A DNA stretch of 64,000 nucleotides from Blastocladiella emersonii ATCC 22665. Lineage: Eukaryota; Fungi; Blastocladiomycota. Positions within the stretch are counted from its first letter, which is position 1; every line of letters begins with the position of its first letter. This document shows positions 28,606 through 64,000 of the stretch, one piece after another. The stretch is taken from contig JANHCV010000014.1 of NCBI GenBank assembly GCA_025594325.1, positions 124,001-188,000 on the forward strand, written 5' to 3'. The notes beneath the pieces were generated by a model. The model ran no database searches, was not told where the DNA came from, and saw only the letters and a list, made by a program, of their open reading frames with translations. The position numbers and the translations under genes are program-made.

Positions 28606-28894
28606 CTTACGGCGGTGAGCACCGGGGCCTTTTCAGCGTTCTTATGCAGGCTGCGAATCGCAGGAACCTCGAACAGTCTCGTGTTCCTCTCTGTCGATCT
28701 TGCGCCGAGATCAGCTGTCAAGTGTAAACATCAACGTTGTGGTCTTTCGAAGAAACTGTCGAACGAGGACGGTGCAGCGCTGAGAGACGCGTCGATCAAT
28801 CATGTGGTTTCCGGGTGACCGGACCGGCCGGTTTGCCCCAGCTCAGCTCGTCAGTCGCGCTCAAAGACCCTGCCACTCTACCCCTCGACCCTCC

Positions 28895-29586
28895 ATGAAG
28901 CAGACAACGATGCCACCACGTGCAACTCGCTCGGCGGATGCAGCCGAACCGAAGACAGAGTCCGCCAAACAGTCGAAGCGGGAACGGCCACCGAAGCGAG
29001 CGCGGCCAGAGCACGCCAACGAGAAGCGTGCGTCTCAGGACACCCATTACCCCCTCGAAAGCCCCCCCCCACCGACAACTCCGAACTGTGTAGACAAACG
29101 CGTCAAGAAGAACCCGGTGCGCGCGTCGCCGTCGCCGATTGACATTTACGTGACGACGGACAAGACGACGCCGGTCCGCGCGTACCTCGCCCGCGCGCGC
29201 AAGATGCTCGACACGCAAGGGTACGCTGCTATACTCAACGCCCATCAACGGCACACCCACACCACCACGACGTGTTTAGAGAAAACTTTGTGGTGATCCA
29301 CGGCCTCGGCAAGGCGATTGAGCGGGCGGCGCTCGTCGCGACGATGCTGCAGGAGCAGTACCTGGGCGCGGCCACGCTCGAGGTGACGACGGACACGGTG
29401 CGGCTGGCGGACGAGCTCGACTACGAGAACGAGGACCTGGAGCCCGAGATGGACGTGCGGCAGTCGTCGGCGATCCATGTGCGGGTAGCCAAGAAGGCGA
29501 TCCTCAGCTCGGCGCTGCAGGGCGTGTCGGCAGCGGCGTCGCAGGCCGAGCGTGGGGCGGAGCAGCAGGTGAGTACGAAACCATGA
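28895..29586 (+). CDS. POP7: RNase P/MRP subunit Rpp20/Pop7 (Alba fold), join(28895..29027,29094..29220,29280..29586), left-arm copy
   Basis: KRVKKNP..DIYV..KT.VRAYLARARKML, VVIHGLGKAIERA, EVTTDTVRLADE, RQSSAIHVRV. Two canonical introns. Confidence 0.85.
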
Positions 29587-30568
29587 GCCGAAATACAGTG
29601 ATGCTCCTCGGAACCACATCCAGCTCGCGGCTCGACGATGAGACGCGACTCGACCACGGCTAGGGCGAGCGGAGGGGATGCCTGCCCTCCCATTCCCATG
29701 GCAGCGCGGCGAACCGTCGCACCAGACGCGTCTTGCGCAGGTGTTAGCCGCAGGGGGTCGACGCCGCGTCGTGCTGCGGCTGCGGTGCTAGCTGCGTTGT
29801 GACTCTGAGCACGTCGAGTCTTCACACCCGCGACATGACGTGGCGCACCGTTGCCTCGCGCACAGATTGTCGTCGCCCGCGTTGGGGTTCGTGCATCCTG
29901 CGGAATGGGCGGGATTCGCCCCAGATCCTGCGCTCAGGGCCAGATCAGGGCGTGGCGGCGAGTGGTCAGGGCTCGACTGGGCCCGGATTGCGCCCTGACG
30001 GCGCGCGCACACAGCGCTGGGGCCAGATTTGACGCGGATCGCGGCACGATGGGGGCGTGAGCAGTGCGCGAGCGAGTGTGTGAAGGTCGCAGGCCATGTC
30101 AGTCGCTCGCTCGCGCGCGCTGGTGCTACGGTCTCACGAGCGGATGCAGTGTAATGGGTGAGTGTATTCTGGCCCGCGGCCGTGCAAGCAATCTTGGCGC
30201 GATGAAGTGGGTTGCGGCGAGGTGGCAGAGGAGAGAGTGCGCGCCTGCGGGTCTTCATGGCCGCCAACGGTGGCTGTGGCCGCGCAGGATGGCCGCGGCC
30301 ATCGCCAAGTGCGGGCGTGTGGGCCCAATGGATGATGCGGCGGAAACCACACGCGCTAGCCGTCCGTGTGCTTGCGCGCGAGCGGCCGAGGTACTCGGTC
30401 AGCGACGGGGGTGAGTCCGGGGCGGGCTGCACGCGGCACGGGCGCAGGGCGATAATCGAGCGGGCGGCCGCGGTCGTGAACACGGCGGGCGAAGCGAGAA
30501 TCCGCCCGCCGCTGTAGCAAAAGAAGTGCGAGGAGCGAGGATGCGGTCGCGCAGGCGGTCCTTGGCGG

Positions 30569-33500
30569 GATGCGCCAGTGGAAGAAGGCGCGGGCGCGGG
30601 TCCACTTGAGCACGGCGCGCACCGCGCCCTTGGCCTTCATGCGCCAGGGCGCGTCGTGCGGGTCGGCGAACTTGAGCGGGGCCTGGTGGTAGGCGGGCAG
30701 CAGCGACTCCTGACGCGGCTGGTGCTGCGCCTGCAGCGCGGCGCGCGTCGCTGCGAGGTTCTCGTCGCCCGAGTCGTACTTCTTGGACGCAGCGTCGCCG
30801 GCTAATTTGCTGCCGCTATCCGCAGCAGCGGCGCCAGCATTCGCGGGCGCGACCTTGGACTTCCAGCGGCGGCAGCCGTCGTCGAGGCAGTCGATGGTGG
30901 CGAGCAGCTGGAGCTTGCGGAAGGTAATCTCGACCAGGCCCTTGGGCTCGAGGACGCCGCCGCGGGCGCTCGCGTCGGCGTACATCTTCATGCCGCCGCT
31001 CTGGTGGATCGACGGACCAAGAACGACCCGGGCGCCGCCGCGGAGCTCGCCGTGCGGGGCAATGTAGACGAACACGGGTCGCAGATAGGTGCGCAGCGCG
31101 TCGACAATGTAGCTGCCAAACTTGAGGATGGCGTCGAACATGTCGCGCTGGCCGCCCAAGAACCCGCGCCAGTTGGCGAAGATGAGCAGCGGGAGCCCCT
31201 CGTGGCCGAAGTCGCGGATCACCTGCGCCGTCCTGTACGAGGACGCGGGCGTCCACACGCCGGGCGGGTCGCCGACCATCTGCTCGGCCGATTCCGGGTT
31301 CGCCGGGGTCGGCGGGGATCACGGCCTCAACGGCGCGTCTTGACGGCGATCGCGCCGCGGGAACACCGCCGAGACGGCCGCGGCCAACCACCACCAATTC
31401 GCTCCACCCGTCCATGGTCTCCATGCACGATCCGAGGTCAAAAAAAAACCCGCCGACCCGCGCGCCCGTCTCGTCGCGCGACCAGCGCGCCGCCGTCAAC
31501 GAAACGAGCAGCGACCCAAACAGCGACGACAGGGCTGTGTCGGCGTCGGCGCCGTTGGCCTCGTCGTCCTCGGCGTTGGTCGCGAGCACCTCGACCGCGA
31601 CGTTGAGCACGTGCCACGGCTCGGTGCGGCCGAGCTTCTTGGCCTTGACCTGCCGGAACAGCACGAGGCTCGCGGGCAGGTGCTGCTGGAGCTTGGCGGC
31701 GTCGCGGACGGCGGCCATGATGCCGACACGGACGTGGCCGAGGTCGCCGCACTCGATCATGGCCGTGCGCATGTTGTTGTACGCGGACCCGCCGGCGGCG
31801 GCGGTCGATGCGTTGCCGATCCCGAGGTCGTCGGCAGGGAACTGGAAGTGCCACTCGACGAGCGGGCCGGGGACCGCGTCGAGTTGCTTGGCGGCGTGGG
31901 CGCGGTGGGTGTTGAAGCCGCGGCGCACGTACATGTCGAGGGCAATGAGGCGGTCGACGGCGGGCACGTCGTGCTCGTATAAGAGCGAGGGCAGGACGTC
32001 AAAAATCGAGAGGGGCAAGTTGATCAGGTTCATGGCCTCCTCGTGCACGGTGGGCGACGCCTCGGGCAGCGACGCGACGGCGCGCATCACGTCACAGAAC
32101 TGGCGGTACCGCTCGTCGAACCCGGGCAGCTGCATCGCGATCAGCAGCGCGCGGACGCGGAGCTGGACCGACTGGGCGCCCTTGGCCTTGGCGACTGACG
32201 ACGAGACGGCAGCGGCGCCGCCGAGCTCGGCGAGCTGGTAGAGCGCCGTGCACAGCTTCTGGACGTTGGCGGAGCAAGCGAGGACCGAGCGCTGGGCGGC
32301 GACGAGGTCGAGGACCGCGCCGATCGCCTCACCCTTCCACGCGGCGCGCGACCGCGAAAAGCACGTCCAGTAGAGCGTCTCGGGCTCCATGCGGGTGCGG
32401 AGCTCGAGCACCGTCTTCTCGGTGTGCACGGCGTCGCCGCCCGACATGAACGGCGACTCGGACGCGTGGAACCGGCGGATCAGGCGGTTGAGCTCGGCGA
32501 CGGCGTGCGCGTCAGCGCCCGCCTCGTACTTGTGGACGACCTCGAGGATTGGCGCAATGGCCGCCTGGTCGGGGACCGTGGCGAGGAGCGTGAGCGGCCC
32601 GGCGGCCAGGAACGGCGTGGCGTTGGTCGACGACGCGGGCGATACGAGGTCGAGCAGCTTGCCCTTGAGGTTGTGGGGCAACCGGTCGTGGTCACCGCCA
32701 AAGACCTGCGCCGCGTGGTGGTCCGGCAGCTCGGGGCGGTGGATTACGTCGAGGTACGCGGTCAGGAGCGACGCGAAGGCCTGCACCTGCTCGAACCCGT
32801 CAACGGCCTGGTTGAGCGCCTGCTGCAGGTCGAGGTGCCGCTGGTGGGCCTTGTTGGTCGTTGAGACGCAGGACGAGCAGGTCGCGGGCGGCGAGGGTCA
32901 CGGCAATGTTGTAGCGCACGCCGTCGAGGATGAAGGAGGTCGAGAACTGGTTCTTGATGCCGGCGAGCGTGGGCACCTGGCCCTTCTCGAGCGACTTGAG
33001 GAACTGAGCCTTCTGGTCCTCAGCGGCGAGGAAGGCCATGGTGGCGGTGCCCGTGACGACCGAGACCCAGCGATCGGGCCGCTCGGCCGTGAGTTTCTGC
33101 TGGATGCGGGCGTCGAGCCACTCGGTCGAGAAGTGGTTGTTGGCGAACTCGTCCGTCTCGAGCAGCATGATGAGGATTTCGGCGGTCGTGGGGAAGTCGC
33201 CGCGGATGCGCAGCTCCTTGAGCGCCGTGATCATGTTGCGGCGCGACGAGTGGCGGTCATAGCCATACGCGCACACGTGGCCAAACTGCGAGTCGGCACA
33301 CTCGTGCAGCCCGCCGTTGGCCAAGACGGAGAAGTAGCCCCACACGTCCGTCAACGACCGGAAGTTGAGCTCGACGGGGTGCCCGCCCGCCGAACGGCTT
33401 GAACCCGGCGTCCGGGTTCTCGGCCGTGATGCGGCACGCGATGACGCGGTCCGTCGGCGCCGGCTTGCGCTGGATCGTCAGCGACTGCGGGTGGTCGAAA

Positions 33501-34549
33501 TGGAAGTCGATCTCGGACGTGGTACGCGGCGGCAGCCTGTACAGCATACGCACGTGCGGGATGCGGTGCAGCGGGATGCCCATGGCGACCTGCAGCTGCG
33601 TCGCAGGGAGGTTGATGCCCGAGACCATCTCGGTGATCGGGTGCTTGACCTGCAGGTGCGGGTTGAACTCGAGGAAGTAGTACTTGTTGCTGGCCACGTC
33701 GTAGAGAAACTCGACGATGCCGGCGTTGACGTCGCCGACGAGCTTGGCGAGGCGGACGGCCGACACCTTCATGTCCTTGAAGATGGCCGGGTTGGCGATG
33801 GTGACGGGGGCCTCCTCGATGATCTTCTGGTGGCAGCGCTGGACCGAGCAGTCGCGGCCGAACAGCGAGATGGTGTTGCTGTACGCGTCGGCGAGGATCT
33901 GGACCTCGAGGTGGCGCGCGTTGGACGCCAGGCGCATGCGGAAGACGGGCGAGCCCTGCACCTCGGCGGCGACCTGCACAAACGCGGCGCGGAACTGCGA
34001 CGGGTCCGTGACCTTGCGGATGCCCTCGCCGCTGCCGCCCTTGGACTCCTTGATCTGCTCGGTTCGGGGGTGCGCGGGTGAGCGAGCTGGTCGATAACAC
34101 GTCTAAGCGACAGAATCAACATACCACAGGCGGATAGCCCACGCGGTCCAGCGACCTTAATGGCCTGCTCGACGTTGGTGACGCAGGCCTTGAGGTAGAG
34201 GTCCTCGGGGACGATGATCATGCCGTCGGCGTTGCGGGCGTTGGTGACGAGGCCGTCGCCGGACCAGCCCATGGTGGGGACGTTGGCGGACTGGGCGACG
34301 ATGGTGGAGGAGATCTTGCTGCCAAGGGTGCGCATGGCGTTGTCAGGCGGGCCGATGAAGACGATGCCCCTCTCGACGAGGCGGTCGGGCAGGTGCGGGT
34401 TCTCGGAGGCGTGGCCCCAGCCGGCCCGCACGGCGTCGACGCCGGCCGACTTGGCGAGCTCGACGATCAGGTCGATGTCGGCGTAGTACTAGTTGTTGTC
34501 GCTGAGGCCGCCGGGGACCAGGATGAAGTGCTCGTCCATGCGGATGCAC
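30569..34549 (-). pseudogene. ACC1: Acetyl-CoA carboxylase pseudogene, left-arm copy
   Basis: Mirror of 58260-62240. It has BC motifs (AGWGHASENP, RDCSVQR.HQK, ITAENPD), part of the central domain and CT C-lobe motifs (ANWRGF.GGQRDM, GELRGG), plus a stop, frameshifts and domain deletions. Confidence 0.92.
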
Positions 34550-35377
34550 CCAGCGCTGCCGAAGGGGCGAACAATGACGCCCTAGACGGTTCCGAAACGA
34601 TGCAGGGGGGTCGATGAGTCTCGCAGGCTCAAAGGCAGCGGCGTCCGAGCTGGGAAGCCGTGGCGCCGCTTTGAGCGGCATTACGGGCCCAACGACGACA
34701 AGGTTGGGAGCGTGGGTCATGAAGAGCGTACAGTTCGATCGAGGAAGCGAGTCTCGCTCGCGGCGAGTGTCAAGTACACGGCGTTCTCATTGAGCGCGCT
34801 GGTTCGTAGCGGCAGTCGGTCGACCCCAACTTGTGCGCGTCAAGTGTAAACCGATGCATCTCAGAAGTGACAGTATGCATGTTGCAGCAAGTTATGTGCT
34901 TCGTAGAATTCATGGGAGGAGCGTGGGGTGCCCGACTCGGGCGGCGAGGCGGCGATGTTGACGCGTCGTTCATGTTGACCGCCACATGTGCTCGCGTCGC
35001 TCCTTCGCGCTCGCGGCCGGATCGCGGCCGGATCACGGCCAAACTGGTGCCCAACAACCAATCCCTTTGTTGGCGACCATTTGCTGCGCACGGCGCCGCC
35101 CGCCTACTTTGCGCCGGCGGCCCCGCGCCCACCCCTCCGCTTCCTTTGCACAGCGGCCGCGGGCAACCACTCCATCCGACTGCCGCACGCTGTCCGCCTT
35201 GCCCAGCCCCTCAACCCGCTCGCTCGACACCGTAACCTTGCCCTGCCTCTCGCGCCGTTATCTCAACCCGGTCCCTCCTGTTCTTATGCTCTCGCTCGCG
35301 CCTTCACCGCCACTTTGGCCCGCCCCGCCGACCCTGACGCCGCCGTACGCGACGCTAGCTACGAGCAGCGCACTCGA

Positions 35378-35760
35378 ATGCCCGATGCAGCTCTCCTTGA
35401 GCTTGCCTCGGTCGTACTGGTACGCGGCTCTCCCCGCGCATGTACACATCGGGCAAGTTTGCTCACTCGCTGTCCTCAAAACTCGTGTGCTCGACCGCAG
35501 CACGGCGTTCCCAAGTCGCTCGGTGTGTTTTCGTCGCTCTCTCCTCTCGAGATCAAGTCTGACATGCGATCCGCTGTTCTTCGCGCTCAAGTAGGTGAAC
35601 CGCCAGGAACCCGATCAACTCGGCATGGCGACGACCTACAAGGTGCGTTCCCGCGTGCAAGCTCAAGTTCGTGTTGGCGGCACCGCAGCTGTCCGAGAAC
35701 CGCATGTCCGTCAAGCTGGCCACACGGTCGTCAAGGTGCTCACCCGGCGGCGCCGCTGCA
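35378..35760 (+). pseudogene. Small spliced gene relic of unknown family (left arm; mirror at 57049-57431)
   Basis: MPDAALLELASVVL, then intron 35420-35500 (GTACGC..CTCAC..CGCAG), then HGVPKSLGVF..DPLFFALK*VNRQEPDQLGMATTYKV with frame changes. Confidence 0.3.
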
Positions 35761-36885
35761 GCGACGAGCAAGAGGAGCGGTCGGTGTGTGCGCACGTGTG
35801 GATTACTCGATATACGGACTGTATGATGAATCACGCGACTTTCGCGGATTGAGAGCCATTTTAAGCGAGATAGGGGGTGAGATTGGGCCAAGAACGCTTC
35901 GGCCGTCATTCGCGCCCATATCGCGGCTCGCGTGGGCTGCCGTCGCGCGAGGATCACGCCCGGACCCCTCGGGCCCACTCGGGCCGCGATCCAAGGCCAG
36001 CAGCAGCGCGAGACGGGCGCGAAGCAGGCCCGGCAGTCAGGGTGGTTTCGCGGCTCACTCGCGGTGCCGTCGTGCACGCGCTGGGCCCGAATCACGGCCG
36101 GATCATGCTGCGATCGGCAAACATGAGCCGGTCACTCCAAGCCCAGCGGAGCGCCAGGCGCCGGCCGCGCGTGTCAGGCCCGGATCGCGGTGCTATCGTC
36201 TTCTTGCCTGGTCGCGACCCAGTCGCCCTTTCGCGGTCCAATTGCACCCCAAACCCGTTCCATCATTTTTCCGACGGACCTCTGAACGCGCAGGCAGACG
36301 CACTTCACTCTGCCGTTGTACGCTGCTCCACAAGGTCTGGCGCGGCCGCACGCGGGCGCTCAGGGCGCGTTGTGTTTCTGTTTTCCTGCTGGCGAGCAAG
36401 AGGGCATGGTGTCCGGCAGCTAACCAGCACGGTGCCCGACTCCCATTCCCTCACTCCCGATTATGGTGCCCGAATATTGTTGAGCAGCGCGGGTCACGGT
36501 TCGCTCGCCGTCCCGCGCAAACGCCACGCGGATCGCGCGCAGTCGTGTAGCTCCGCGGCATCACGCGCACGGCCCTCGTCGCCTTTACAAGAATCATAGC
36601 CCTGTCGGAGCTGTCCACGAAGCGCGTTGTTTCCGATTTTTTCGCCTAGTAGATCAGAGCAGGATCACGGTTGATCAGTCGCGATCACGGTGGCGGTCCG
36701 GCACGCCCGAGACGCGGGCGGCCTCCCTCGCTCGCCAACGGGTCGCCGCGCTCGCAGTGCTGCGCGAGCTCTCACTCCAGCTAGGCCGGCAGCAGTGCTC
36801 GATGGAAATTGAATGCATGGAGTGCGTTACGGAGCTGCATGAGTCAGAGTGGAGCTAAGGAGCTAGGGAGTGCGGCGGTGGGAAG

Positions 36886-37757
36886 AAAACGTGCTGTGCG
36901 ACTGACCATGAGGGAGGTGACGAAATCACGTTTTGAAGCCAGCCGTCATGCAGGCAGGCCGCGCTCCCGCGCACGTTTTTTTGCTCTGCCGCACTGAAGC
37001 TCACTCACCTCACACCCCCGGCTGACCGACGCGGCTGCTTGCTCGGCTGCAAGCTTGCAGGACGAGGTTCTTGGCACTCATCACTCGAGTTGCAGTCGGC
37101 GGCGGCGGCGAGCATCCGAGTCGTCCCGAGGGAGGCCGCCAACCGCGGTGAGGCCGGACAGAAAATAGAGTGACGTCGGCCGTGAGGCTGTGAGCTGTGA
37201 GCGATGGAAGAGTGCATGGAGTGGTCTGTCGGTCAGTGCGCCGCCCTGAGCACGAAGGTTTCAGCCTCCATCGCTGACCTCTCGGCGGGGAGCACGCCGA
37301 ACAACCTCAGGGACCATGAGGGACGATGGCCGTGGCCATGGGGGACGCCGTCCATAGCGGCCTCGGCCGCAGCAGCCTGGCCAGGGACCGCCGCCGGCCG
37401 GCGAACGTTTTCAAGCCGGCGGACGGAACGCTGCCTCGGTCCCTCGTGGGCAATCTAGGCGTGCCCACGAGTGCCGTGGTGAGAGGCTGGCCGCGCGTCG
37501 CGAGCCGTTGGAAAGCGTGTTGCGACGCGTCGCGCCCGTCGCGCACAACTGTCTCCCCGCGAGCGCCGCCACAAACGTGCGCGGTGGCAGCGCCCGAGGT
37601 TCGAGAAGGCCGGTGGGGCGCCGCCGGTCCGGTCCGCTGGGCCAATCGGAGCGGTTGCAGTGCGCCCTGTGGCGCAAGGTTTGCCGCAGCAAAAACGTTT
37701 TCTTGACCCCGCCACACGCATGACCCCCGGAGGCCCGCGAAGCCGAGGAAACGTTTT
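36886..37757 (+). promoter_or_regulatory. Cluster of (C)ACGTTTT sites upstream of PHO84, candidate Pho4-type elements (mirror 55052-55923)
   Basis: CACGTTTT at 36886 (reverse), 36927 and 36972; ACGTTTT at 37405, 37695 (within palindromic AAAACGTTTT) and 37751. Confidence 0.5.
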
Positions 37758-38051
37758 TTCGTCGCGGCCCTCGCCATCTCGCCCCATGCGTGCAAGAGCG
37801 AGTGCGGAGGAGCGGCTTGCCCGCACACAGAGAGGCAGCAATCACGGCCGACGTCACCTCGGCGGTCGGCGGTCGGCGGTCGGCGGCCGGCCCTCCTCGG
37901 CCTCGCCGCTGGCCGCGTACAAAAGGCCGGCGCTCCCCCCCGCCGACCCAGAGTCTCGTTAAACATCGTCAGCATACCCAAAAGGCTTCGGTCATCCTCC
38001 ACCGTCTCTCCGCCGTCCTCCCCGCCGAAACCCCACCGACGCATCAACACC

Positions 38052-39772
38052 ATGTCCGCTGCCGCCGACTTCTCGGCCATGGACAGCCAGAAGTTCAACC
38101 GCTTCCACCTGAAAACCATTTTGGTGAGCGGGGTGGGTTTTTATACGGACGCTCTAGATATCTTTATTATCAACCTCGCCATCCCGATGATCGCCTTCTC
38201 GTGGTTCTTCGTGCCCGGCGCGACCGAGCCGTCCAAGGCGTCGGCCATGCCGTCCATCGTGACCTCGCTCCTCAAGGCGTCGACCCAGGTCGGCACGCTG
38301 TGCGGCCAGCTCGTGTTCGGCTACCTCGGCGACAAGCTCGGCCGCAAGGCCACCTACGGTCTCGTCCTCGCCATCATGATCATCGCCTCGTTCAACACCT
38401 CGCTCGCCGCCGACACCAAGGGCTTCATCGGCATCGGCGGCATGCTCATCTTCTGGCGTCTCGTTCTCGGCGTCGGTATTGGCGGTGGTACGCTAACATT
38501 TCCCCTTTTCCGTGGTGTGGAAGCGAGCCTCCCCCATCTCCTTTCCAACTTGTATTAACAAAAAGACGCCCGAATTAAGACTACCCCATTTCTGCGGTTA
38601 TCGCGTCCGAGTTCGCGTCCGTTTCGACCCGCGGCCTCATGGTCGCCGCCGTCTTCTCGATGCAGGGCATGGGCATCCTCACGGGCTGCCTGTTCTCGAC
38701 GCTCCTCCTGCTGATCCTCAAGCCGACGCTCCAGCCCGTCGACAGCACGACCATCTACGTCTCCAACTTTGACAACGTGTGGCGCATCCTGTTCTTCATC
38801 GGTGTCCTGCCCGCCATCGCCGCCGTGTACTGGCGCCTGCAGGTCCCCGAGACGCCGCGTTTCTCGGCCGCCAAGGGCGACCACGACACGGCCATGAAGG
38901 ACCTGTCCAAGGTCATGCACGAGATCCAGGGCTCGAACGGCGGCGACATCTCGGTCGACCTCGAGGCGTCGCCCGCGTCCTCGTCCGAGCACCTCGCGCT
39001 GCCGACCACGGCCAACCAGCCCGGCTACCTCCAGGAGAAGTACACGCACATCACGTTTGGCCAGCTCTTCGGCAACTGGAAGAACGGCAAGGTCCTGTTT
39101 GCGTGCGCCATGGCGTGGTTCCTGCTCGACGTCGGCTTCTACGGCGTGCAGCTCAACCAGTCGGACATTCTCAAGTTCATCGGCTACGCCAAGGGCGCGA
39201 CGGCGTACGAGTACTTCCTCAACCAGTCGATCGGCAACCTCATCCTGTCGCTGTGCGGCACCGTGCCCGGCTATTTCTTCACCGTCGCCCTCATCGAGAA
39301 GATGGGCCGCATCAAGATCCAGCTCATGGGCTTCGGCATCCTCACGGCCATCTTCGTCGTGCTCACCATCTTCTACCACCAGATGAAGGGCACGATCTGG
39401 CTCGTCATTGCCTTCACGGCCGCCAACTTCTTCTTCAACTTTGGCCCCAACACCACCACGTTCATCCTGCCCGCCGAGATCTTCCCGACCAAGTACCGCT
39501 CGACGTGCCACGGTATCTCGGCGGCCACGGGCAAGGCCGGCGCTATCCTCGCCGCCTTCGGCTTCGACCAGATCAAGGGCAAGAACGGCGAGAACATGAC
39601 CACGGTGCTCGCCATCTTCACGGCGTGCATGATCGGCGGGTTCCTCGTCACCTTCTGGGTGCCCGAGACCAAGGGCAAGTCGCTCGAGGAGCTCGGCGAC
39701 GCCTTCTACCACCCCGATCTCGTCGCGCAGCACCCCGCGCCCATGGTCACGGAGAAGAAGAACAAGGAGTAG
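38052..39772 (+). CDS. PHO84: High-affinity H+/phosphate symporter (MFS, Pho84/PHT1 family), join(38052..38487,38580..39772), 542 aa, left-arm copy
   Basis: SGVGFYTDALDIF, GYLGDKLGRK, spliced GVGIGGDYPISAVIASEFA, VPETPRF, WFLLDVGFYG, FNFGPNTTTFILPAEIFPTKYRSTCHGISAATGKAGA, PETKGKSLEE. The intron is 92 nt, GTACGC..TAAG. Confidence 0.95.
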
Positions 39773-53036: not shown

Positions 53037-54757
53037 CTACTCCTTGTTCTTCTTCTCCGTGACCATGGGCGCGGGGTGCTGCGCGACGAGATCGGGGTGG
53101 TAGAAGGCGTCGCCGAGCTCCTCGAGCGACTTGCCCTTGGTCTCGGGCACCCAGAAGGTGACGAGGAACCCGCCGATCATGCACGCCGTGAAGATGGCGA
53201 GCACCGTGGTCATGTTCTCGCCGTTCTTGCCCTTGATCTGGTCGAAGCCGAAGGCGGCGAGGATAGCGCCGGCCTTGCCCGTGGCCGCCGAGATACCGTG
53301 GCACGTCGAGCGGTACTTGGTCGGGAAGATCTCGGCGGGCAGGATGAACGTGGTGGTGTTGGGGCCAAAGTTGAAGAAGAAGTTGGCGGCCGTGAAGGCA
53401 ATGACGAGCCAGATCGTGCCCTTCATCTGGTGGTAGAAGATGGTGAGCACGACGAAGATGGCCGTGAGGATGCCGAAGCCCATGAGCTGGATCTTGATGC
53501 GGCCCATCTTCTCGATGAGGGCGACGGTGAAGAAATAGCCGGGCACGGTGCCGCACAGCGACAGGATGAGGTTGCCGATCGACTGGTTGAGGAAGTACTC
53601 GTACGCCGTCGCGCCCTTGGCGTAGCCGATGAACTTGAGAATGTCCGACTGGTTGAGCTGCACGCCGTAGAAGCCGACGTCGAGCAGGAACCACGCCATG
53701 GCGCACGCAAACAGGACCTTGCCGTTCTTCCAGTTGCCGAAGAGCTGGCCAAACGTGATGTGCGTGTACTTCTCCTGGAGGTAGCCGGGCTGGTTGGCCG
53801 TGGTCGGCAGCGCGAGGTGCTCGGACGAGGACGCGGGCGACGCCTCGAGGTCGACCGAGATGTCGCCGCCGTTCGAGCCCTGGATCTCGTGCATGACCTT
53901 GGACAGGTCCTTCATGGCCGTGTCGTGGTCGCCCTTGGCGGCCGAGAAACGCGGCGTCTCGGGGACCTGCAGGCGCCAGTACACGGCGGCGATGGCGGGC
54001 AGGACACCGATGAAGAACAGGATGCGCCACACGTTGTCAAAGTTGGAGACGTAGATGGTCGTGCTGTCGACGGGCTGGAGCGTCGGCTTGAGGATCAGCA
54101 GGAGGAGCGTCGAGAACAGGCAGCCCGTGAGGATGCCCATGCCCTGCATCGAGAAGACGGCGGCGACCATGAGGCCGCGGGTCGAAACGGACGCGAACTC
54201 GGACGCGATAACCGCAGAAATGGGGTAGTCTTAATTCGGGCGTCTTTTTGTTAATACAAGTTGGAAAGGAGATGGGGGAGGCTCGCTTCCACACCACGGA
54301 AAAGGGGAAATGTTAGCGTACCACCGCCAATACCGACGCCGAGAACGAGACGCCAGAAGATGAGCATGCCGCCGATGCCGATGAAGCCCTTGGTGTCGGC
54401 GGCGAGCGAGGTGTTGAACGAGGCGATGATCATGATGGCGAGGACGAGACCGTAGGTGGCCTTGCGGCCGAGCTTGTCGCCGAGGTAGCCGAACACGAGC
54501 TGGCCGCACAGCGTGCCGACCTGGGTCGACGCCTTGAGGAGCGAGGTCACGATGGACGGCATGGCCGACGCCTTGGACGGCTCGGTCGCGCCGGGCACGA
54601 AGAACCACGAGAAGGCGATCATCGGGATGGCGAGGTTGATAATAAAGATATCTAGAGCGTCCGTATAAAAACCCACCCCGCTCACCAAAATGGTTTTCAG
54701 GTGGAAGCGGTTGAACTTCTGGCTGTCCATGGCCGAGAAGTCGGCGGCAGCGGACAT
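53037..54757 (-). CDS. PHO84: Pho84-family phosphate transporter, right-arm copy, complement(join(53037..54229,54322..54757))
   Basis: Translations identical to the left copy. Confidence 0.95.
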
Positions 54758-57700
54758 GGTGTTGATGCGTCGGTGGGGTTTCGGCGGGGAGGACGGCGGA
54801 GAGACGGTGGAGGATGACCGAAGCCTTTTGGGTATGCTGACGATGTTTAACGAGACTCTGGGTCGGCGGGGGGGAGCGCCGGCCTTTTGTACGCGGCCAG
54901 CGGCGAGGCCGAGGAGGGCCGGCCGCCGACCGCCGACCGCCGACCGCCGAGGTGACGTCGGCCGTGATTGCTGCCTCTCTGTGTGCGGGCAAGCCGCTCC
55001 TCCGCACTCGCTCTTGCACGCATGGGGCGAGATGGCGAGGGCCGCGACGAAAAAACGTTTCCTCGGCTTCGCGGGCCTCCGGGGGTCATGCGTGTGGCGG
55101 GGTCAAGAAAACGTTTTTGCTGCGGCAAACCTTGCGCCACAGGGCGCACTGCAACCGCTCCGATTGGCCCAGCGGACCGGACCGGCGGCGCCCCACCGGC
55201 CTTCTCGAACCTCGGGCGCTGCCACCGCGCACGTTTGTGGCGGCGCTCGCGGGGAGACAGTTGTGCGCGACGGGCGCGACGCGTCGCAACACGCTTTCCA
55301 ACGGCTCGCGACGCGCGGCCAGCCTCTCACCACGGCACTCGTGGGCACGCCTAGATTGCCCACGAGGGACCGAGGCAGCGTTCCGTCCGCCGGCTTGAAA
55401 ACGTTCGCCGGCCGGCGGCGGTCCCTGGCCAGGCTGCTGCGGCCGAGGCCGCTATGGACGGCGTCCCCCATGGCCACGGCCATCGTCCCTCATGGTCCCT
55501 GAGGTTGTTCGGCGTGCTCCCCGCCGAGAGGTCAGCGATGGAGGCTGAAACCTTCGTGCTCAGGGCGGCGCACTGACCGACAGACCACTCCATGCACTCT
55601 TCCATCGCTCACAGCTCACAGCCTCACGGCCGACGTCACTCTATTTTCTGTCCGGCCTCACCGCGGTTGGCGGCCTCCCTCGGGACGACTCGGATGCTCG
55701 CCGCCGCCGCCGACTGCAACTCGAGTGATGAGTGCCAAGAACCTCGTCCTGCAAGCTTGCAGCCGAGCAAGCAGCCGCGTCGGTCAGCCGGGGGTGTGAG
55801 GTGAGTGAGCTTCAGTGCGGCAGAGCAAAAAAACGTGCGCGGGAGCGCGGCCTGCCTGCATGACGGCTGGCTTCAAAACGTGATTTCGTCACCTCCCTCA
55901 TGGTCAGTCGCACAGCACGTTTTCTTCCCACCGCCGCACTCCCTAGCTCCTTAGCTCCACTCTGACTCATGCAGCTCCGTAACGCACTCCATGCATTCAA
56001 TTTCCATCGAGCACTGCTGCCGGCCTAGCTGGAGTGAGAGCTCGCGCAGCACTGCGAGCGCGGCGACCCGTTGGCGAGCGAGGGAGGCCGCCCGCGTCTC
56101 GGGCGTGCCGGACCGCCACCGTGATCGCGACTGATCAACCGTGATCCTGCTCTGATCTACTAGGCGAAAAAATCGGAAACAACGCGCTTCGTGGACAGCT
56201 CCGACAGGGCTATGATTCTTGTAAAGGCGACGAGGGCCGTGCGCGTGATGCCGCGGAGCTACACGACTGCGCGCGATCCGCGTGGCGTTTGCGCGGGACG
56301 GCGAGCGAACCGTGACCCGCGCTGCTCAACAATATTCGGGCACCATAATCGGGAGTGAGGGAATGGGAGTCGGGCACCGTGCTGGTTAGCTGCCGGACAC
56401 CATGCCCTCTTGCTCGCCAGCAGGAAAACAGAAACACAACGCGCCCTGAGCGCCCGCGTGCGGCCGCGCCAGACCTTGTGGAGCAGCGTACAACGGCAGA
56501 GTGAAGTGCGTCTGCCTGCGCGTTCAGAGGTCCGTCGGAAAAATGATGGAACGGGTTTGGGGTGCAATTGGACCGCGAAAGGGCGACTGGGTCGCGACCA
56601 GGCAAGAAGACGATAGCACCGCGATCCGGGCCTGACACGCGCGGCCGGCGCCTGGCGCTCCGCTGGGCTTGGAGTGACCGGCTCATGTTTGCCGATCGCA
56701 GCATGATCCGGCCGTGATTCGGGCCCAGCGCGTGCACGACGGCACCGCGAGTGAGCCGCGAAACCACCCTGACTGCCGGGCCTGCTTCGCGCCCGTCTCG
56801 CGCTGCTGCTGGCCTTGGATCGCGGCCCGAGTGGGCCCGAGGGGTCCGGGCGTGATCCTCGCGCGACGGCAGCCCACGCGAGCCGCGATATGGGCGCGAA
56901 TGACGGCCGAAGCGTTCTTGGCCCAATCTCACCCCCTATCTCGCTTAAAATGGCTCTCAATCCGCGAAAGTCGCGTGATTCATCATACAGTCCGTATATC
57001 GAGTAATCCACACGTGCGCACACACCGACCGCTCCTCTTGCTCGTCGCTGCAGCGGCGCCGCCGGGTGAGCACCTTGACGACCGTGTGGCCAGCTTGACG
57101 GACATGCGGTTCTCGGACAGCTGCGGTGCCGCCAACACGAACTTGAGCTTGCACGCGGGAACGCACCTTGTAGGTCGTCGCCATGCCGAGTTGATCGGGT
57201 TCCTGGCGGTTCACCTACTTGAGCGCGAAGAACAGCGGATCGCATGTCAGACTTGATCTCGAGAGGAGAGAGCGACGAAAACACACCGAGCGACTTGGGA
57301 ACGCCGTGCTGCGGTCGAGCACACGAGTTTTGAGGACAGCGAGTGAGCAAACTTGCCCGATGTGTACATGCGCGGGGAGAGCCGCGTACCAGTACGACCG
57401 AGGCAAGCTCAAGGAGAGCTGCATCGGGCATTCGAGTGCGCTGCTCGTAGCTAGCGTCGCGTACGGCGGCGTCAGGGTCGGCGGGGCGGGCCAAAGTGGC
57501 GGTGAAGGCGCGAGCGAGAGCATAAGAACAGGAGGGACCGGGTTGAGATAACGGCGCGAGAGGCAGGGCAAGGTTACGGTGTCGAGCGAGCGGGTTGAGG
57601 GGCTGGGCAAGGCGGACAGCGTGCGGCAGTCGGATGGAGTGGTTGCCCGCGGCCGCTGTGCAAAGGAAGCGGAGGGGTGGGCGCGGGGCCGCCGGCGCAA

Positions 57701-58259
57701 AGTAGGCGGGCGGCGCCGTGCGCAGCAAATGGTCGCCAACAAAGGGATTGGTTGTTGGGCACCAGTTTGGCCGTGATCCGGCCGCGATCCGGCCGCGAGC
57801 GCGAAGGAGCGACGCGAGCACATGTGGCGGTCAACATGAACGACGCGTCAACATCGCCGCCTCGCCGCCCGAGTCGGGCACCCCACGCTCCTCCCATGAA
57901 TTCTACGAAGCACATAACTTGCTGCAACATGCATACTGTCACTTCTGAGATGCATCGGTTTACACTTGACGCGCACAAGTTGGGGTCGACCGACTGCCGC
58001 TACGAACCAGCGCGCTCAATGAGAACGCCGTGTACTTGACACTCGCCGCGAGCGAGACTCGCTTCCTCGATCGAACTGTACGCTCTTCATGACCCACGCT
58101 CCCAACCTTGTCGTCGTTGGGCCCGTAATGCCGCTCAAAGCGGCGCCACGGCTTCCCAGCTCGGACGCCGCTGCCTTTGAGCCTGCGAGACTCATCGACC
58201 CCCCTGCATCGTTTCGGAACCGTCTAGGGCGTCATTGTTCGCCCCTTCGGCAGCGCTGG

Positions 58260-61200
58260 GTGCATCCGCATGGACGAGCACTTCATCCTGGTCCCCGGCG
58301 GCCTCAGCGACAACAACTAGTACTACGCCGACATCGACCTGATCGTCGAGCTCGCCAAGTCGGCCGGCGTCGACGCCGTGCGGGCCGGCTGGGGCCACGC
58401 CTCCGAGAACCCGCACCTGCCCGACCGCCTCGTCGAGAGGGGCATCGTCTTCATCGGCCCGCCTGACAACGCCATGCGCACCCTTGGCAGCAAGATCTCC
58501 TCCACCATCGTCGCCCAGTCCGCCAACGTCCCCACCATGGGCTGGTCCGGCGACGGCCTCGTCACCAACGCCCGCAACGCCGACGGCATGATCATCGTCC
58601 CCGAGGACCTCTACCTCAAGGCCTGCGTCACCAACGTCGAGCAGGCCATTAAGGTCGCTGGACCGCGTGGGCTATCCGCCTGTGGTATGTTGATTCTGTC
58701 GCTTAGACGTGTTATCGACCAGCTCGCTCACCCGCGCACCCCCGAACCGAGCAGATCAAGGAGTCCAAGGGCGGCAGCGGCGAGGGCATCCGCAAGGTCA
58801 CGGACCCGTCGCAGTTCCGCGCCGCGTTTGTGCAGGTCGCCGCCGAGGTGCAGGGCTCGCCCGTCTTCCGCATGCGCCTGGCGTCCAACGCGCGCCACCT
58901 CGAGGTCCAGATCCTCGCCGACGCGTACAGCAACACCATCTCGCTGTTCGGCCGCGACTGCTCGGTCCAGCGCTGCCACCAGAAGATCATCGAGGAGGCC
59001 CCCGTCACCATCGCCAACCCGGCCATCTTCAAGGACATGAAGGTGTCGGCCGTCCGCCTCGCCAAGCTCGTCGGCGACGTCAACGCCGGCATCGTCGAGT
59101 TTCTCTACGACGTGGCCAGCAACAAGTACTACTTCCTCGAGTTCAACCCGCACCTGCAGGTCAAGCACCCGATCACCGAGATGGTCTCGGGCATCAACCT
59201 CCCTGCGACGCAGCTGCAGGTCGCCATGGGCATCCCGCTGCACCGCATCCCGCACGTGCGTATGCTGTACAGGCTGCCGCCGCGTACCACGTCCGAGATC
59301 GACTTCCATTTCGACCACCCGCAGTCGCTGACGATCCAGCGCAAGCCGGCGCCGACGGACCGCGTCATCGCGTGCCGCATCACGGCCGAGAACCCGGACG
59401 CCGGGTTCAAGCCGTTCGGCGGGCGGGCACCCCGTCGAGCTCAACTTCCGGTCGTTGACGGACGTGTGGGGCTACTTCTCCGTCTTGGCCAACGGCGGGC
59501 TGCACGAGTGTGCCGACTCGCAGTTTGGCCACGTGTGCGCGTATGGCTATGACCGCCACTCGTCGCGCCGCAACATGATCACGGCGCTCAAGGAGCTGCG
59601 CATCCGCGGCGACTTCCCCACGACCGCCGAAATCCTCATCATGCTGCTCGAGACGGACGAGTTCGCCAACAACCACTTCTCGACCGAGTGGCTCGACGCC
59701 CGCATCCAGCAGAAACTCACGGCCGAGCGGCCCGATCGCTGGGTCTCGGTCGTCACGGGCACCGCCACCATGGCCTTCCTCGCCGCTGAGGACCAGAAGG
59801 CTCAGTTCCTCAAGTCGCTCGAGAAGGGCCAGGTGCCCACGCTCGCCGGCATCAAGAACCAGTTCTCGACCTCCTTCATCCTCGACGGCGTGCGCTACAA
59901 CATTGCCGTGACCCTCGCCGCCCGCGACCTGCTCGTCCTGCGTCTCAACGACCAACAAGGCCCACCAGCGGCACCTCGACCTGCAGCAGGCGCTCAACCA
60001 GGCCGTTGACGGGTTCGAGCAGGTGCAGGCCTTCGCGTCGCTCCTGACCGCGTACCTCGACGTAATCCACCGCCCCGAGCTGCCGGACCACCACGCGGCG
60101 CAGGTCTTTGGCGGTGACCACGACCGGTTGCCCCACAACCTCAAGGGCAAGCTGCTCGACCTCGTATCGCCCGCGTCGTCGACCAACGCCACGCCGTTCC
60201 TGGCCGCCGGGCCGCTCACGCTCCTCGCCACGGTCCCCGACCAGGCGGCCATTGCGCCAATCCTCGAGGTCGTCCACAAGTACGAGGCGGGCGCTGACGC
60301 GCACGCCGTCGCCGAGCTCAACCGCCTGATCCGCCGGTTCCACGCGTCCGAGTCGCCGTTCATGTCGGGCGGCGACGCCGTGCACACCGAGAAGACGGTG
60401 CTCGAGCTCCGCACCCGCATGGAGCCCGAGACGCTCTACTGGACGTGCTTTTCGCGGTCGCGCGCCGCGTGGAAGGGTGAGGCGATCGGCGCGGTCCTCG
60501 ACCTCGTCGCCGCCCAGCGCTCGGTCCTCGCTTGCTCCGCCAACGTCCAGAAGCTGTGCACGGCGCTCTACCAGCTCGCCGAGCTCGGCGGCGCCGCTGC
60601 CGTCTCGTCGTCAGTCGCCAAGGCCAAGGGCGCCCAGTCGGTCCAGCTCCGCGTCCGCGCGCTGCTGATCGCGATGCAGCTGCCCGGGTTCGACGAGCGG
60701 TACCGCCAGTTCTGTGACGTGATGCGCGCCGTCGCGTCGCTGCCCGAGGCGTCGCCCACCGTGCACGAGGAGGCCATGAACCTGATCAACTTGCCCCTCT
60801 CGATTTTTGACGTCCTGCCCTCGCTCTTATACGAGCACGACGTGCCCGCCGTCGACCGCCTCATTGCCCTCGACATGTACGTGCGCCGCGGCTTCAACAC
60901 CCACCGCGCCCACGCCGCCAAGCAACTCGACGCGGTCCCCGGCCCGCTCGTCGAGTGGCACTTCCAGTTCCCTGCCGACGACCTCGGGATCGGCAACGCA
61001 TCGACCGCCGCCGCCGGCGGGTCCGCGTACAACAACATGCGCACGGCCATGATCGAGTGCGGCGACCTCGGCCACGTCCGTGTCGGCATCATGGCCGCCG
61101 TCCGCGACGCCGCCAAGCTCCAGCAGCACCTGCCCGCGAGCCTCGTGCTGTTCCGGCAGGTCAAGGCCAAGAAGCTCGGCCGCACCGAGCCGTGGCACGT

Positions 61201-62240
61201 GCTCAACGTCGCGGTCGAGGTGCTCGCGACCAACGCCGAGGACGACGAGGCCAACGGCGCCGACGCCGACACAGCCCTGTCGTCGCTGTTTGGGTCGCTG
61301 CTCGTTTCGTTGACGGCGGCGCGCTGGTCGCGCGACGAGACGGGCGCGCGGGTCGGCGGGTTTTTTTTTGACCTCGGATCGTGCATGGAGACCATGGACG
61401 GGTGGAGCGAATTGGTGGTGGTTGGCCGCGGCCGTCTCGGCGGTGTTCCCGCGGCGCGATCGCCGTCAAGACGCGCCGTTGAGGCCGTGATCCCCGCCGA
61501 CCCCGGCGAACCCGGAATCGGCCGAGCAGATGGTCGGCGACCCGCCCGGCGTGTGGACGCCCGCGTCCTCGTACAGGACGGCGCAGGTGATCCGCGACTT
61601 CGGCCACGAGGGGCTCCCGCTGCTCATCTTCGCCAACTGGCGCGGGTTCTTGGGCGGCCAGCGCGACATGTTCGACGCCATCCTCAAGTTTGGCAGCTAC
61701 ATTGTCGACGCGCTGCGCACCTATCTGCGACCCGTGTTCGTCTACATTGCCCCGCACGGCGAGCTCCGCGGCGGCGCCCGGGTCGTTCTTGGTCCGTCGA
61801 TCCACCAGAGCGGCGGCATGAAGATGTACGCCGACGCGAGCGCCCGCGGCGGCGTCCTCGAGCCCAAGGGCCTGGTCGAGATTACCTTCCGCAAGCTCCA
61901 GCTGCTCGCCACCATCGACTGCCTCGACGACGGCTGCCGCCGCTGGAAGTCCAAGGTCGCGCCCGCGAATGCTGGCGCCGCTGCTGCGGATAGCGGCAGC
62001 AAATTAGCCGGCGACGCTGCGTCCAAGAAGTACGACTCGGGCGACGAGAACCTCGCAGCGACGCGCGCCGCGCTGCAGGCGCAGCACCAGCCGCGTCAGG
62101 AGTCGCTGCTGCCCGCCTACCACCAGGCCCCGCTCAAGTTCGCCGACCCGCACGACGCGCCCTGGCGCATGAAGGCCAAGGGCGCGGTGCGCGCCGTGCT
62201 CAAGTGGACCCGCGCCCGCGCCTTCTTCCACTGGCGCATC
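58260..62240 (+). pseudogene. ACC1: Acetyl-CoA carboxylase pseudogene, right-arm copy
   Basis: TAG at 58318-58320, retained intron 58685-58754, and frameshifts near 58655, 59425, 61455 and 61510. The biotinyl domain is absent at about 59950, the CT N-lobe is absent at about 61355, and both ends are truncated. Confidence 0.92.
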
Positions 62241-63222
62241 CCGCCAAGGACCGCCTGCGCGACCGCATCCTCGCTCCTCGCACTTCTTTTGCTACAGCGG
62301 CGGGCGGATTCTCGCTTCGCCCGCCGTGTTCACGACCGCGGCCGCCCGCTCGATTATCGCCCTGCGCCCGTGCCGCGTGCAGCCCGCCCCGGACTCACCC
62401 CCGTCGCTGACCGAGTACCTCGGCCGCTCGCGCGCAAGCACACGGACGGCTAGCGCGTGTGGTTTCCGCCGCATCATCCATTGGGCCCACACGCCCGCAC
62501 TTGGCGATGGCCGCGGCCATCCTGCGCGGCCACAGCCACCGTTGGCGGCCATGAAGACCCGCAGGCGCGCACTCTCTCCTCTGCCACCTCGCCGCAACCC
62601 ACTTCATCGCGCCAAGATTGCTTGCACGGCCGCGGGCCAGAATACACTCACCCATTACACTGCATCCGCTCGTGAGACCGTAGCACCAGCGCGCGCGAGC
62701 GAGCGACTGACATGGCCTGCGACCTTCACACACTCGCTCGCGCACTGCTCACGCCCCCATCGTGCCGCGATCCGCGTCAAATCTGGCCCCAGCGCTGTGT
62801 GCGCGCGCCGTCAGGGCGCAATCCGGGCCCAGTCGAGCCCTGACCACTCGCCGCCACGCCCTGATCTGGCCCTGAGCGCAGGATCTGGGGCGAATCCCGC
62901 CCATTCCGCAGGATGCACGAACCCCAACGCGGGCGACGACAATCTGTGCGCGAGGCAACGGTGCGCCACGTCATGTCGCGGGTGTGAAGACTCGACGTGC
63001 TCAGAGTCACAACGCAGCTAGCACCGCAGCCGCAGCACGACGCGGCGTCGACCCCCTGCGGCTAACACCTGCGCAAGACGCGTCTGGTGCGACGGTTCGC
63101 CGCGCTGCCATGGGAATGGGAGGGCAGGCATCCCCTCCGCTCGCCCTAGCCGTGGTCGAGTCGCGTCTCATCGTCGAGCCGCGAGCTGGATGTGGTTCCG
63201 AGGAGCATCACTGTATTTCGGC

Positions 63223-63915
63223 TCATGGTTTCGTACTCACCTGCTGCTCCGCCCCACGCTCGGCCTGCGACGCCGCTGCCGACACGCCCTGCAGCGCCGA
63301 GCTGAGGATCGCCTTCTTGGCTACCCGCACATGGATCGCCGACGACTGCCGCACGTCCATCTCGGGCTCCAGGTCCTCGTTCTCGTAGTCGAGCTCGTCC
63401 GCCAGCCGCACCGTGTCCGTCGTCACCTCGAGCGTGGCCGCGCCCAGGTACTGCTCCTGCAGCATCGTCGCGACGAGCGCCGCCCGCTCAATCGCCTTGC
63501 CGAGGCCGTGGATCACCACAAAGTTTTCTCTAAACACGTCGTGGTGGTGTGGGTGTGCCGTTGATGGGCGTTGAGTATAGCAGCGTACCCTTGCGTGTCG
63601 AGCATCTTGCGCGCGCGGGCGAGGTACGCGCGGACCGGCGTCGTCTTGTCCGTCGTCACGTAAATGTCAATCGGCGACGGCGACGCGCGCACCGGGTTCT
63701 TCTTGACGCGTTTGTCTACACAGTTCGGAGTTGTCGGTGGGGGGGGGGCTTTCGAGGGGGTAATGGGTGTCCTGAGACGCACGCTTCTCGTTGGCGTGCT
63801 CTGGCCGCGCTCGCTTCGGTGGCCGTTCCCGCTTCGACTGTTTGGCGGACTCTGTCTTCGGTTCGGCTGCATCCGCCGAGCGAGTTGCACGTGGTGGCAT
63901 CGTTGTCTGCTTCAT
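63223..63915 (-). CDS. POP7: Rpp20/Pop7, right-arm copy, complement(join(63223..63529,63589..63715,63783..63915))
   Basis: Mirror of 28895-29586. The 1 bp homopolymer difference falls inside intron 1, so the spliced frame is preserved. Confidence 0.85.
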
Positions 63916-64000
63916 GGAGGGTCGAGGGGTAGAGTGGCAGGGTCTTTGAGCGCGACTGACGAGCTGAGCTGGGGCAAACCGGCCGGTCCGGTCACCCGGA

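Follow-up and report, generated by a model that had tools for sequence, protein, structure and literature searches.

The window analysed in this study is a 64-kb stretch of DNA from the water-mould-like fungus Blastocladiella emersonii ATCC 22665. It contains two inverted copies of one gene-bearing segment, which were detected by a repeat search and by blastn of one arm against the reverse-complemented other arm. The left arm lies at 28810-41576 (+ strand), and the right arm, which is the reverse complement of the left, lies at 51232-64000 (− strand). The arms flank a single-copy spacer of approximately 9.66 kb (41577-51231), and the axis of the palindrome is 46404.5. The right arm extends to the last base of the window and leaves it there; the partner of the left arm's outer end would fall past 64000, so it is outside the window. 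The arm length of 12.8 kb is therefore a minimum.

Genes and relics in the arms and spacer

Each arm carries a gene for a PHO84-type phosphate:H+ symporter. The left copy (38052-39772, + strand) is made up of three exons (38052-38487, 38580-38953 and 39035-39772) and two introns (38488-38579 and 38954-39034). The right copy (53037-54757, − strand) is identical to the left (100% by tblastn). The reading frame is intact, with 542 codons when one intron is removed and 515 aa when two are removed. After removal of the 81-nt in-frame intron, the product matches the B. emersonii "High affinity phosphate transporter" (P0001) at all of its 515 aa (100% identity), and it shares 60-63% identity with phosphate transporters from Allomyces and Catenaria. 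From its sequence, the cargo gene is predicted to encode a full-length MFS protein of the PHS/PHO84 phosphate:H+ symporter kind. Approximately 1.1 kb upstream of PHO84, there are three CACGTTTT motifs (36886-36979), which are mirrored at 55830-55923; this motif occurs seven times in the window, as against 1.19 times expected. Because the motif cluster is mirrored, both PHO84 copies have the same upstream region, and the region common to them is 3.4 kb long.

A third, partial copy of PHO84 is present in the spacer. This 436-bp patch (45819-46254, − strand) comes from arm positions 38584-39019, with one mismatch, and contains nearly all of exon 2 and most of intron 2. Because intron 2 is largely retained, a cDNA origin of the patch is excluded. 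No decayed third PHO84 gene was found around it: tblastn matched the patch alone, and its flanks have no PHO84 homology. An orphan gene with a strong codon-position GC signal is located just upstream of the patch (46456-47067, − strand), and a family search with this gene gave no match.

The arms also contain POP7/Rpp20 (left copy, 28895-29586, + strand, PF12328, E value 2.4e-10; right copy, 63223-63915, − strand) and a truncated acetyl-CoA carboxylase (ACC1) relic (left, 30356-34640, − strand; right, 58169-62453, + strand). Biotin carboxylase, BT, central and C-terminal carboxyltransferase domains are each represented in the ACC1 relic by fragments; neither a biotin-carrier domain nor the N-terminal carboxyltransferase half was found in it. 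For the long reading frames at 34.6-38.0, 39.8-41.5 and 47-51 kb, there was neither a Pfam match nor a codon-position GC signal. No tRNA or Rfam gene was detected in the 64-kb window. POP7/Rpp20 and the ACC1 relic are the other recognisable contents of the arms, in agreement with the sequence-only reading of this DNA, which had named POP7 as the other arm gene and regarded the remainder as relics. The same reading had proposed that an intact PHO84 gene is doubled by the palindrome, and this proposal is borne out by the translation match and by tblastn.

Identity of the arms and decay at their inner edges

The blastn comparison of the arms gave a single alignment (left 28810-41581 versus right 64000-51227) of 12,774 columns, in which the identity is 99.92%, with eight mismatches and two gaps. 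These differences are distributed very unevenly. In the arm bodies (left 28810-41498, right 51311-64000), there is no substitution over 12,689 bp, and the sole difference is a homopolymer indel: a run of nine C residues at 29062-29070 in the left arm is a run of ten in the right arm. The indel is located inside POP7, in a candidate 66-nt intron or N-terminal extension. Nine of the ten differing columns fall within the innermost 78 columns, as compared with one in the other 12,689 (Fisher p 7e-20). Two identical 12.7-kb copies cannot have arisen by chance. The inverted duplication with an axis near 46404, a 9.7-kb spacer and arms of at least 12.8 kb, which the sequence-only reading had described, was recovered by repeat search and blastn, and the read data agree with it.

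At its inner edge (41499-41576, + strand), the left arm has diverged and is approximately 90% identical to positions 51310-51232 of the right arm (51232-51310, − strand). The differences comprise five transitions (four of them at CpG in the left copy), three other substitutions and one indel. At seven of the eight substituted sites, the right copy has A or T where the left copy has G or C. Immediately beyond these edges, hexamer arrays adjoin both arms. On the left, there is a hexamer/12-mer minisatellite (41577-41950, + strand), which consists of (GTGAGC)n followed by (GTGAGCGTAAGC)n; its counterpart on the right is a short (GAGAGT)3 array (51212-51236, − strand). Past the left minisatellite, a stretch at 41953-41985 (+ strand) is approximately 72% identical to the right side at about 51213-51180. 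This alignment was first spotted by eye and the statistical test was performed afterwards, position-constrained to the region beyond the hexamer arrays: the score was 10-11, versus 2.2-2.8 ± 1.5 for shuffled sequences, and it was reached by 0-1 of 2000 shuffles and by 2 of 3000 genomic 40-mers. Therefore, going inwards, identity falls from 100% to approximately 90% (78 bp), then to different hexamer arrays, then to approximately 72% (30-40 bp), and then to none. Neither blastn between the spacer halves nor unconstrained local alignment near the junctions gave a significant sign of an older inverted duplication within the spacer, and the position-constrained stretch just beyond the hexamer arrays is the only significant inverted homology there. 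The putative relic at 41953-41985 is, as we read the alignment, the last remnant of the original duplication.

Read depth across the palindrome

Word depth was taken from exact-match unitigs of three public read runs (X1, X2 and X3). All three runs are from one sample, which is probably the very one that was assembled. In X2, the deepest run, the depth was 147, 149 and 139 in the spacer (range 139-149), 276, 278, 279 and 279 in the arm (range 276-279) and 416 in the PHO84 patch. The ratio of spacer, arm and patch is thus 1:2:3 (spacer to arm, 1:1.9), as expected of a patch present in three copies. The order was the same in the other two runs, although the ratios were weaker (approximately 1:1.4:2.1 in X1 and 1:1.25:2.1 in X3). 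No variant contigs were found within arm positions 51663-54999 in X1 or X2. Therefore, the raw data likewise show identical arms in this region. A homogenised palindrome is characterised by many-kb inverted arms that are at least 99.9% identical, by a unique spacer and by the physical presence of both arms (spacer comparison and word depth), and all of these properties were observed here.

Discussion

Could the palindrome be a product of the assembly, that is, a fold-back or chimeric join, a mis-join of haplotypes, or polishing that made two slightly different copies identical? The arms (at least 12.8 kb) exceed the mean HiFi read of the B. emersonii assembly (10.5 kb; PMC9730499), and few reads would be able to span one. 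Moreover, the assembly was purged and Pilon-polished (PMC9730499), and all of the runs come from one sample. However, the word depth, which does not depend on the assembly, gives one copy of the spacer, two of the arm and three of the patch. The sequences of the left and right junctions differ, so both are present in the reads; a fold-back chimera would not yield a 9.66-kb gene-bearing spacer; and variant contigs are absent from the arm in X1 and X2. A fold-back or collapse artefact was dismissed because depth and the distinct junctions contradict it. The sequence-only reading had named depth as a check for a fold-back; in X2, the arm has twice the depth of the spacer, which argues against this kind of artefact. 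The artefact explanation is already largely refuted, and we regard it as highly improbable.

The locus is a genuine chromosomal palindrome of B. emersonii ATCC 22665, and its architecture, copy numbers, gene assignments and edge decay are shown by the data above. We propose that it is probably an old inverted segmental duplication whose arm bodies have been kept letter-identical by arm-to-arm gene conversion. According to this proposal, arms of at least 12.8 kb came to flank the 9.66-kb single-copy spacer long ago, and recombination between the arms would hold their bodies identical. Only the innermost 80-150 bp or so would escape correction and drift apart. A graded loss of identity is expected at this place because conversion needs homology on either side of a break and hence fails near the edge. 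Crossing-over between the arms may also flip the spacer. The doubled dosage of PHO84 would then be a by-product rather than the cause, and the passive outcome would be two identical and identically promoted PHO84 copies, two POP7 copies and a dead ACC1 fragment. The eroded inner edge favours an old duplication with arm-to-arm conversion over a brand-new one. The sequence-only reading had left the choice between "very recent" and "actively homogenised"; the second fits the eroded inner edge better. The evidence on age comprises approximately 120 bp at one edge of a locus from a single strain. In B. britannica, the matches are short partial contigs.

A young inverted duplication, formed by a template switch or by a fold-back after a break at a pre-existing imperfect inverted repeat, would copy the arm once and need no gene conversion. 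The seeding repeat would comprise approximately 80 bp plus the hexamer array, with its halves 9.7 kb apart. Such an event accounts for the lack of substitutions in 12,689 bp, it could leave the same edge, and the diverged stretch is located precisely at the junction, where the seeding repeat would sit. Furthermore, inverted copy-number variants are known to begin at inverted repeats (PMC4689423, PMC10766186). However, the graded decay, from 90% to 72% past the arrays, resembles the erosion of a longer homology rather than a discrete repeat, and the seeding repeat would itself require an older inverted duplication. In addition, patch and arms disagree at 1 of 436 bases, whereas the two arms disagree with each other at 0 of 12,689; had the arms diverged freely throughout the existence of the patch, this split would have a chance of approximately 0.03, a value that presupposes arms older than the patch. 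We therefore consider a young duplication rather unlikely, although it is the alternative to which we give the most weight. Less probable still is that the duplication arose or persisted because two phosphate importers were favoured under phosphate limitation, like SUL1 in sulfate-limited yeast. Both PHO84 copies are intact and have the same 3.4-kb upstream region with its three motifs, and the B. emersonii life cycle is reportedly under the control of phosphate supply (Gomes-Vieira 2018 and Bongiorno 2012, cited through PMC6085062). SUL1/ODIRA amplicons, however, are interstitial inverted triplications (2n+1 copies) with an inverted central copy; their junctions are at short interrupted inverted repeats, and an origin is always included (PMC4689423). 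The present architecture differs from this: the copy number in the window is two and not odd, the arm depth being twice and not three times that of the spacer, and what lies between the copies is 9.66 kb of unique DNA with genes in it, not a loop of tens of bases. An ODIRA amplicon was rejected because both the copy number and the type of junction are wrong. The arm also holds POP7 and the dead ACC1 fragment. The suggestion of the sequence-only reading, a PHO84 dosage amplicon selected by nutrient limitation as in the case of SUL1, is unsupported; an adaptive origin seems very unlikely to us.

The old, conversion-maintained duplication that we prefer can be set beside several known systems. 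Kilobase-scale, gene-bearing inverted arms around a unique spacer are also a feature of sex-chromosome palindromes (human Y P1-P8, primate X, and willow and poplar). The arms of these palindromes are more than 99.9% identical, and arm-to-arm gene conversion is held responsible. The B. emersonii locus is comparable in that its arm bodies are identical and its edge is eroded. In contrast to the sex-chromosome cases, the host is an early-diverging fungus and the cargo consists of housekeeping and nutrient genes, not reproductive ones. To our knowledge, no sex chromosome has been described in B. emersonii. In PMC7023750, the arm identity of sex-chromosome palindromes is attributed to gene conversion. 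The ODIRA SUL1 amplicons are similar to the B. emersonii locus in providing extra inverted copies of a nutrient-transporter locus, but in the present case the arm occurs twice, on either side of a unique spacer of 9.66 kb, and depth gives no third copy of it. Inverted segmental duplications that inverted repeats mediate, such as human DUP-TRP/INV-DUP events and related copy-number variants, resemble it as interstitial inverted duplications with an inner junction at an imperfect inverted repeat. These events are recent, disease-associated and have a triplicated core. By contrast, the B. emersonii locus showed no triplicated segment, and the pattern at its edge points to age.

In the model fungus B. 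emersonii, the gene for the high-affinity phosphate transporter is present as two identical copies and a third fragment of 436 bp, and this matters for knock-outs of PHO84 or POP7, for qPCR and for expression work in this strain. Palindromes or inverted repeats are not mentioned in the published B. emersonii genome paper, and the legend to its Fig. 1 presents only an asexual life cycle for this fungus. By analogy with the human Y chromosome, as it is thought to work, it is conceivable, if doubtful, that B. emersonii uses many autosomal gene-bearing palindromes, in which intrachromosomal conversion between arms would replace meiotic recombination and preserve pairs such as those of PHO84 and POP7. 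If this is true, the PHO84 locus, whose arm bodies are identical and whose edge has eroded, would be a clean case of conversion that substitutes for meiotic recombination. If B. emersonii palindromes in general were old duplications held identical by gene conversion, a phenomenon best known from sex chromosomes would also occur on the ordinary chromosomes of a fungus that diverged early and is apparently asexual.

Structure and read depth of the inverted duplication

A repeat search of the window returned an inverted pair in two pieces, a larger one (29062-41572 / 51237-63747) and an outer one (28810-29070 / 63740-64000). When the left region was aligned with the reverse-complemented right region by blastn, both pieces fused into one alignment of 12,774 columns with 99.92% identity. 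The axis lies at 46404.5 and the spacer (41577-51231) is about 9.66 kb. Thus, the large inverted duplication claimed by the sequence-only reading was borne out, with the axis and spacer values that it gave. Because the right arm (51232-64000) reaches the last base of the window, the arm length is a minimum. In the full listing of alignment differences, left-arm 28810-41498 and right-arm 64000-51311 differ solely by one base in a C run, which is C9 at 29062-29070 in the left arm and C10 in the right arm. The remaining differences (five transitions, three other substitutions and one indel) are all confined to the innermost 78 columns (left, 41499-41576; right, 51310-51232), beyond which the alignment ends. 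Nine of the ten differing columns therefore fall within 78 columns, versus one in 12,689 (Fisher p = 7e-20).

The published ATCC 22665 assembly (21 contigs, 34.27 Mb in total) was built by La Jolla Assembler from PacBio HiFi reads (mean length, 10.5 kb; about 186x), purged of duplicates and then Pilon-polished (PMC9730499). The strings "palindrom" and "inverted" are both absent from the text of that paper. Four public sequencing runs of one sample, probably the assembled one, contain the stretch. These were compared as assembled contigs with word depths over 49000-54999, an interval that includes the right-hand junction and the PHO84 copy of the right arm. In the deepest run (X2, exact-match unitigs), word depth was 147, 149 and 139 in the spacer, 276, 278, 279 and 279 in the arm, and 416 in a 436-bp PHO84 patch (1:1.9:2.9). 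The runs X1 (about 43, 61 and 92; 1:1.4:2.1) and X3 (about 7.4, 9.2 and 15.4; 1:1.25:2.1) gave the same ranking with weaker ratios, which may reflect short-read bias at the local G+C content, low depth or heterogeneity. X2 contained no variant contigs within 51663-54999. An arm depth of about half that of the flanks had been proposed as a sign of an assembly artefact; instead, each arm is at single-copy depth and the two together are at 2x. Since the two junctions differ in sequence, both are present in the reads. A fold-back chimera is contradicted by the 2x arm depth, the distinct junction sequences and the 9.66-kb gene-bearing spacer.

Contents of the arms and spacer

Gene content was judged by codon-position G+C and Pfam. 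PHO84, the arm gene for a phosphate:H+ symporter (38052-39772, plus strand; right copy 53037-54757, minus strand), is oriented toward the palindrome centre. With two introns spliced out (92 nt at 38488-38579 and an 81-nt in-frame GT..AG intron at 38954-39034), its product is 100% identical over 515 residues to P0001, a B. emersonii database protein named 'High affinity phosphate transporter'. Therefore, the window belongs to B. emersonii. The second intron (mirror, 53775-53855) has no stop codon, and its third-position G+C is as high as that of the exons; if retained, it would add 27 residues in a loop, which are absent from the database protein. At 53118-53151, X1-X3 contigs of other loci match about 30 nt of the PHO84 3' part and then diverge on both sides, which hints that the genome contains a related transporter gene at another locus. 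Upstream of PHO84, at a distance of about 1.1 kb, the motif CACGTTTT, which equals the yeast Pho4 UASp1-type site, occurs three times within 94 bp (36886-36979; mirror, 55830-55923); the window contains seven versus 1.19 expected. These three motifs lie in 3.4 kb of the arm without coding signal, and a further 1.7 kb also lacks coding signal.

The second arm gene is POP7/Rpp20 (28895-29586; PF12328, E = 2.4e-10). Our findings fit the proposal that no arm genes other than PHO84 and POP7 are intact, with the caveat that the C9/C10 run lies inside POP7, in either a candidate 66-nt GTGCGT..TAG intron or an N-terminal extension. If the run belongs to the extension, the right copy would carry a frameshift ahead of its Rpp20 domain. 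The difference could also be a homopolymer error. A truncated acetyl-CoA carboxylase (ACC1) relic (30356-34640, minus strand) keeps pieces of Biotin_carb_N, CPSase_L_D2, Biotin_carb_C, ACCA_BT, ACC_central (56-480) and Carboxyl_trans (308-488). Its biotin-carrier domain and the N-terminal carboxyltransferase half were undetected by Pfam, and its reading frame shifts repeatedly. Despite this, its third-position G+C is still 0.86-0.99: either the gene died recently, or its composition was kept by a process other than selection, such as biased gene conversion in the arms.

The spacer contains an orphan gene (46456-47067) and two reading frames of lower G+C, for one of which Pfam gave weak ankyrin matches. 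In about 3 kb of the spacer by the right junction, summed X2 depth is 2-6x single copy; relatives at least 95% identical are therefore present elsewhere in the genome, and the sequence belongs to a dispersed repeat family. Within 49000-51200, X2 depth peaks at about 900 (50600-50800), many variant contigs occur and Pfam gave no family. Searches of the window for tRNA genes and Rfam families were negative. In the left flank, four diverged units with 60-87% identity are arranged in tandem at 18802-22994, at a spacing of 1.04-1.46 kb.

The spacer also carries the PHO84 patch (45819-46254), which was copied from arm 38584-39019 and has a single mismatch to it. [quoted passage not shown] Its copy number was confirmed by the 3x word depth. 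It runs from 4 nt into exon 2 to 15 nt short of the intron 2 end. Because it contains intron 2 sequence, its source was genomic DNA, and a cDNA origin is ruled out. A decayed third PHO84 gene is likewise ruled out, since tblastn found no PHO84 homology on either side. Thus, the patch is an isolated insertion or conversion tract, and shows ectopic, homology-driven repair at the locus with PHO84 as donor.

Decay of identity at the inner edge and age of the duplication

At the inner edge, CpG sites of the left copy account for four of the five transitions, and seven of the eight substituted sites are G/C in the left copy and A/T in the right. Both arms terminate at GTGAG-type hexamer arrays. The right array is (GAGAGT)3, and the left (41577-41950) has grown to about 370 bp, with (GTGAGC)n followed by (GTGAGCGTAAGC)n, about 24 copies of GTGAGCGTAAGC. 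This minisatellite has long open frames on both strands (Tyr-Ala-His-Ala, Arg-Ser-Arg-Leu and Val-Ser repeats), for which neither a coding signal nor a family supports a gene. When the two halves of the spacer were compared without constraint on position, no homology was detected. Directly past both arrays, 30-40 nt align at about 72%, with a score of 10-11 versus 2.2-2.8 +/- 1.5 for shuffles; scores this high came up 0-1 times in 2000 shuffles and twice among 3000 random genomic 40-mers. It should be mentioned that the alignment was spotted by eye, so the test is post hoc, with the position fixed beforehand. From the arm body toward the spacer, identity thus falls from 100% to 90%, to about 72% and to none. 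At 51044-51319, right-spacer sequence in one contig of the low-depth run X3 (depth 5.5) continues into letters of the left-arm type at 51280 and 51285, and the contig has three further differences. It is either a word-graph chimera via a 33-nt stretch common to both edges or a conversion boundary that varies among DNA preparations.

We consider it probable that the duplication is old and that its body has been homogenised. Breaks in one arm would be repaired from the other arm, which would homogenise the body. Such repair would depend on homologous sequence to the left and right of a break and would seldom reach the last few tens of bases, so that the edge would drift. An eroded edge is what arm-to-arm repair leads one to expect, and we prefer the old, homogenised duplication for this reason. 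The patch differs from the arms at one of 436 bases and the arms from each other at 0 of 12,689 (p = about 0.03, provided that the arms are no younger than the patch), which adds weak support. As the chief alternative, the duplication would be young and would have started from an imperfect inverted repeat that already existed. This reading predicts the observed junction position; however, it needs further assumptions to explain the graded decay, and we regard it as rather unlikely. The distinction between the two readings disappears if the "young" event itself consisted of a long conversion of one older repeat by another. Hence, from the suggestion of a very recent or actively homogenised palindrome, the eroded edge favors homogenisation, and youth is retained only in the rival explanation.

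Gene dosage and rearrangement

The sequence-only reading also compared the locus with SUL1-type amplicons. The palindrome is real and PHO84 is doubled, but the SUL1-type architecture does not apply. The products of SUL1-type ODIRA are interstitial inverted triplications, in which the junctions lie at short interrupted inverted repeats and an origin is always present (PMC4689423). In contrast, the B. emersonii palindrome has two copies, and these are 9.66 kb apart. On these two defining features, an ODIRA amplicon was rejected. According to papers cited in PMC6085062, phosphate controls the B. emersonii life cycle; a dosage benefit from two PHO84 copies is therefore conceivable. The identical inverted 12.7-kb arms would be well suited to crossing-over with each other, by which the spacer would be inverted and no gene broken. 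Because the arms exceed the mean read length, at best the longest reads support the assembled spacer orientation. The patch adds further substrates, through which 7.97 kb could be deleted or 6.8 kb inverted.
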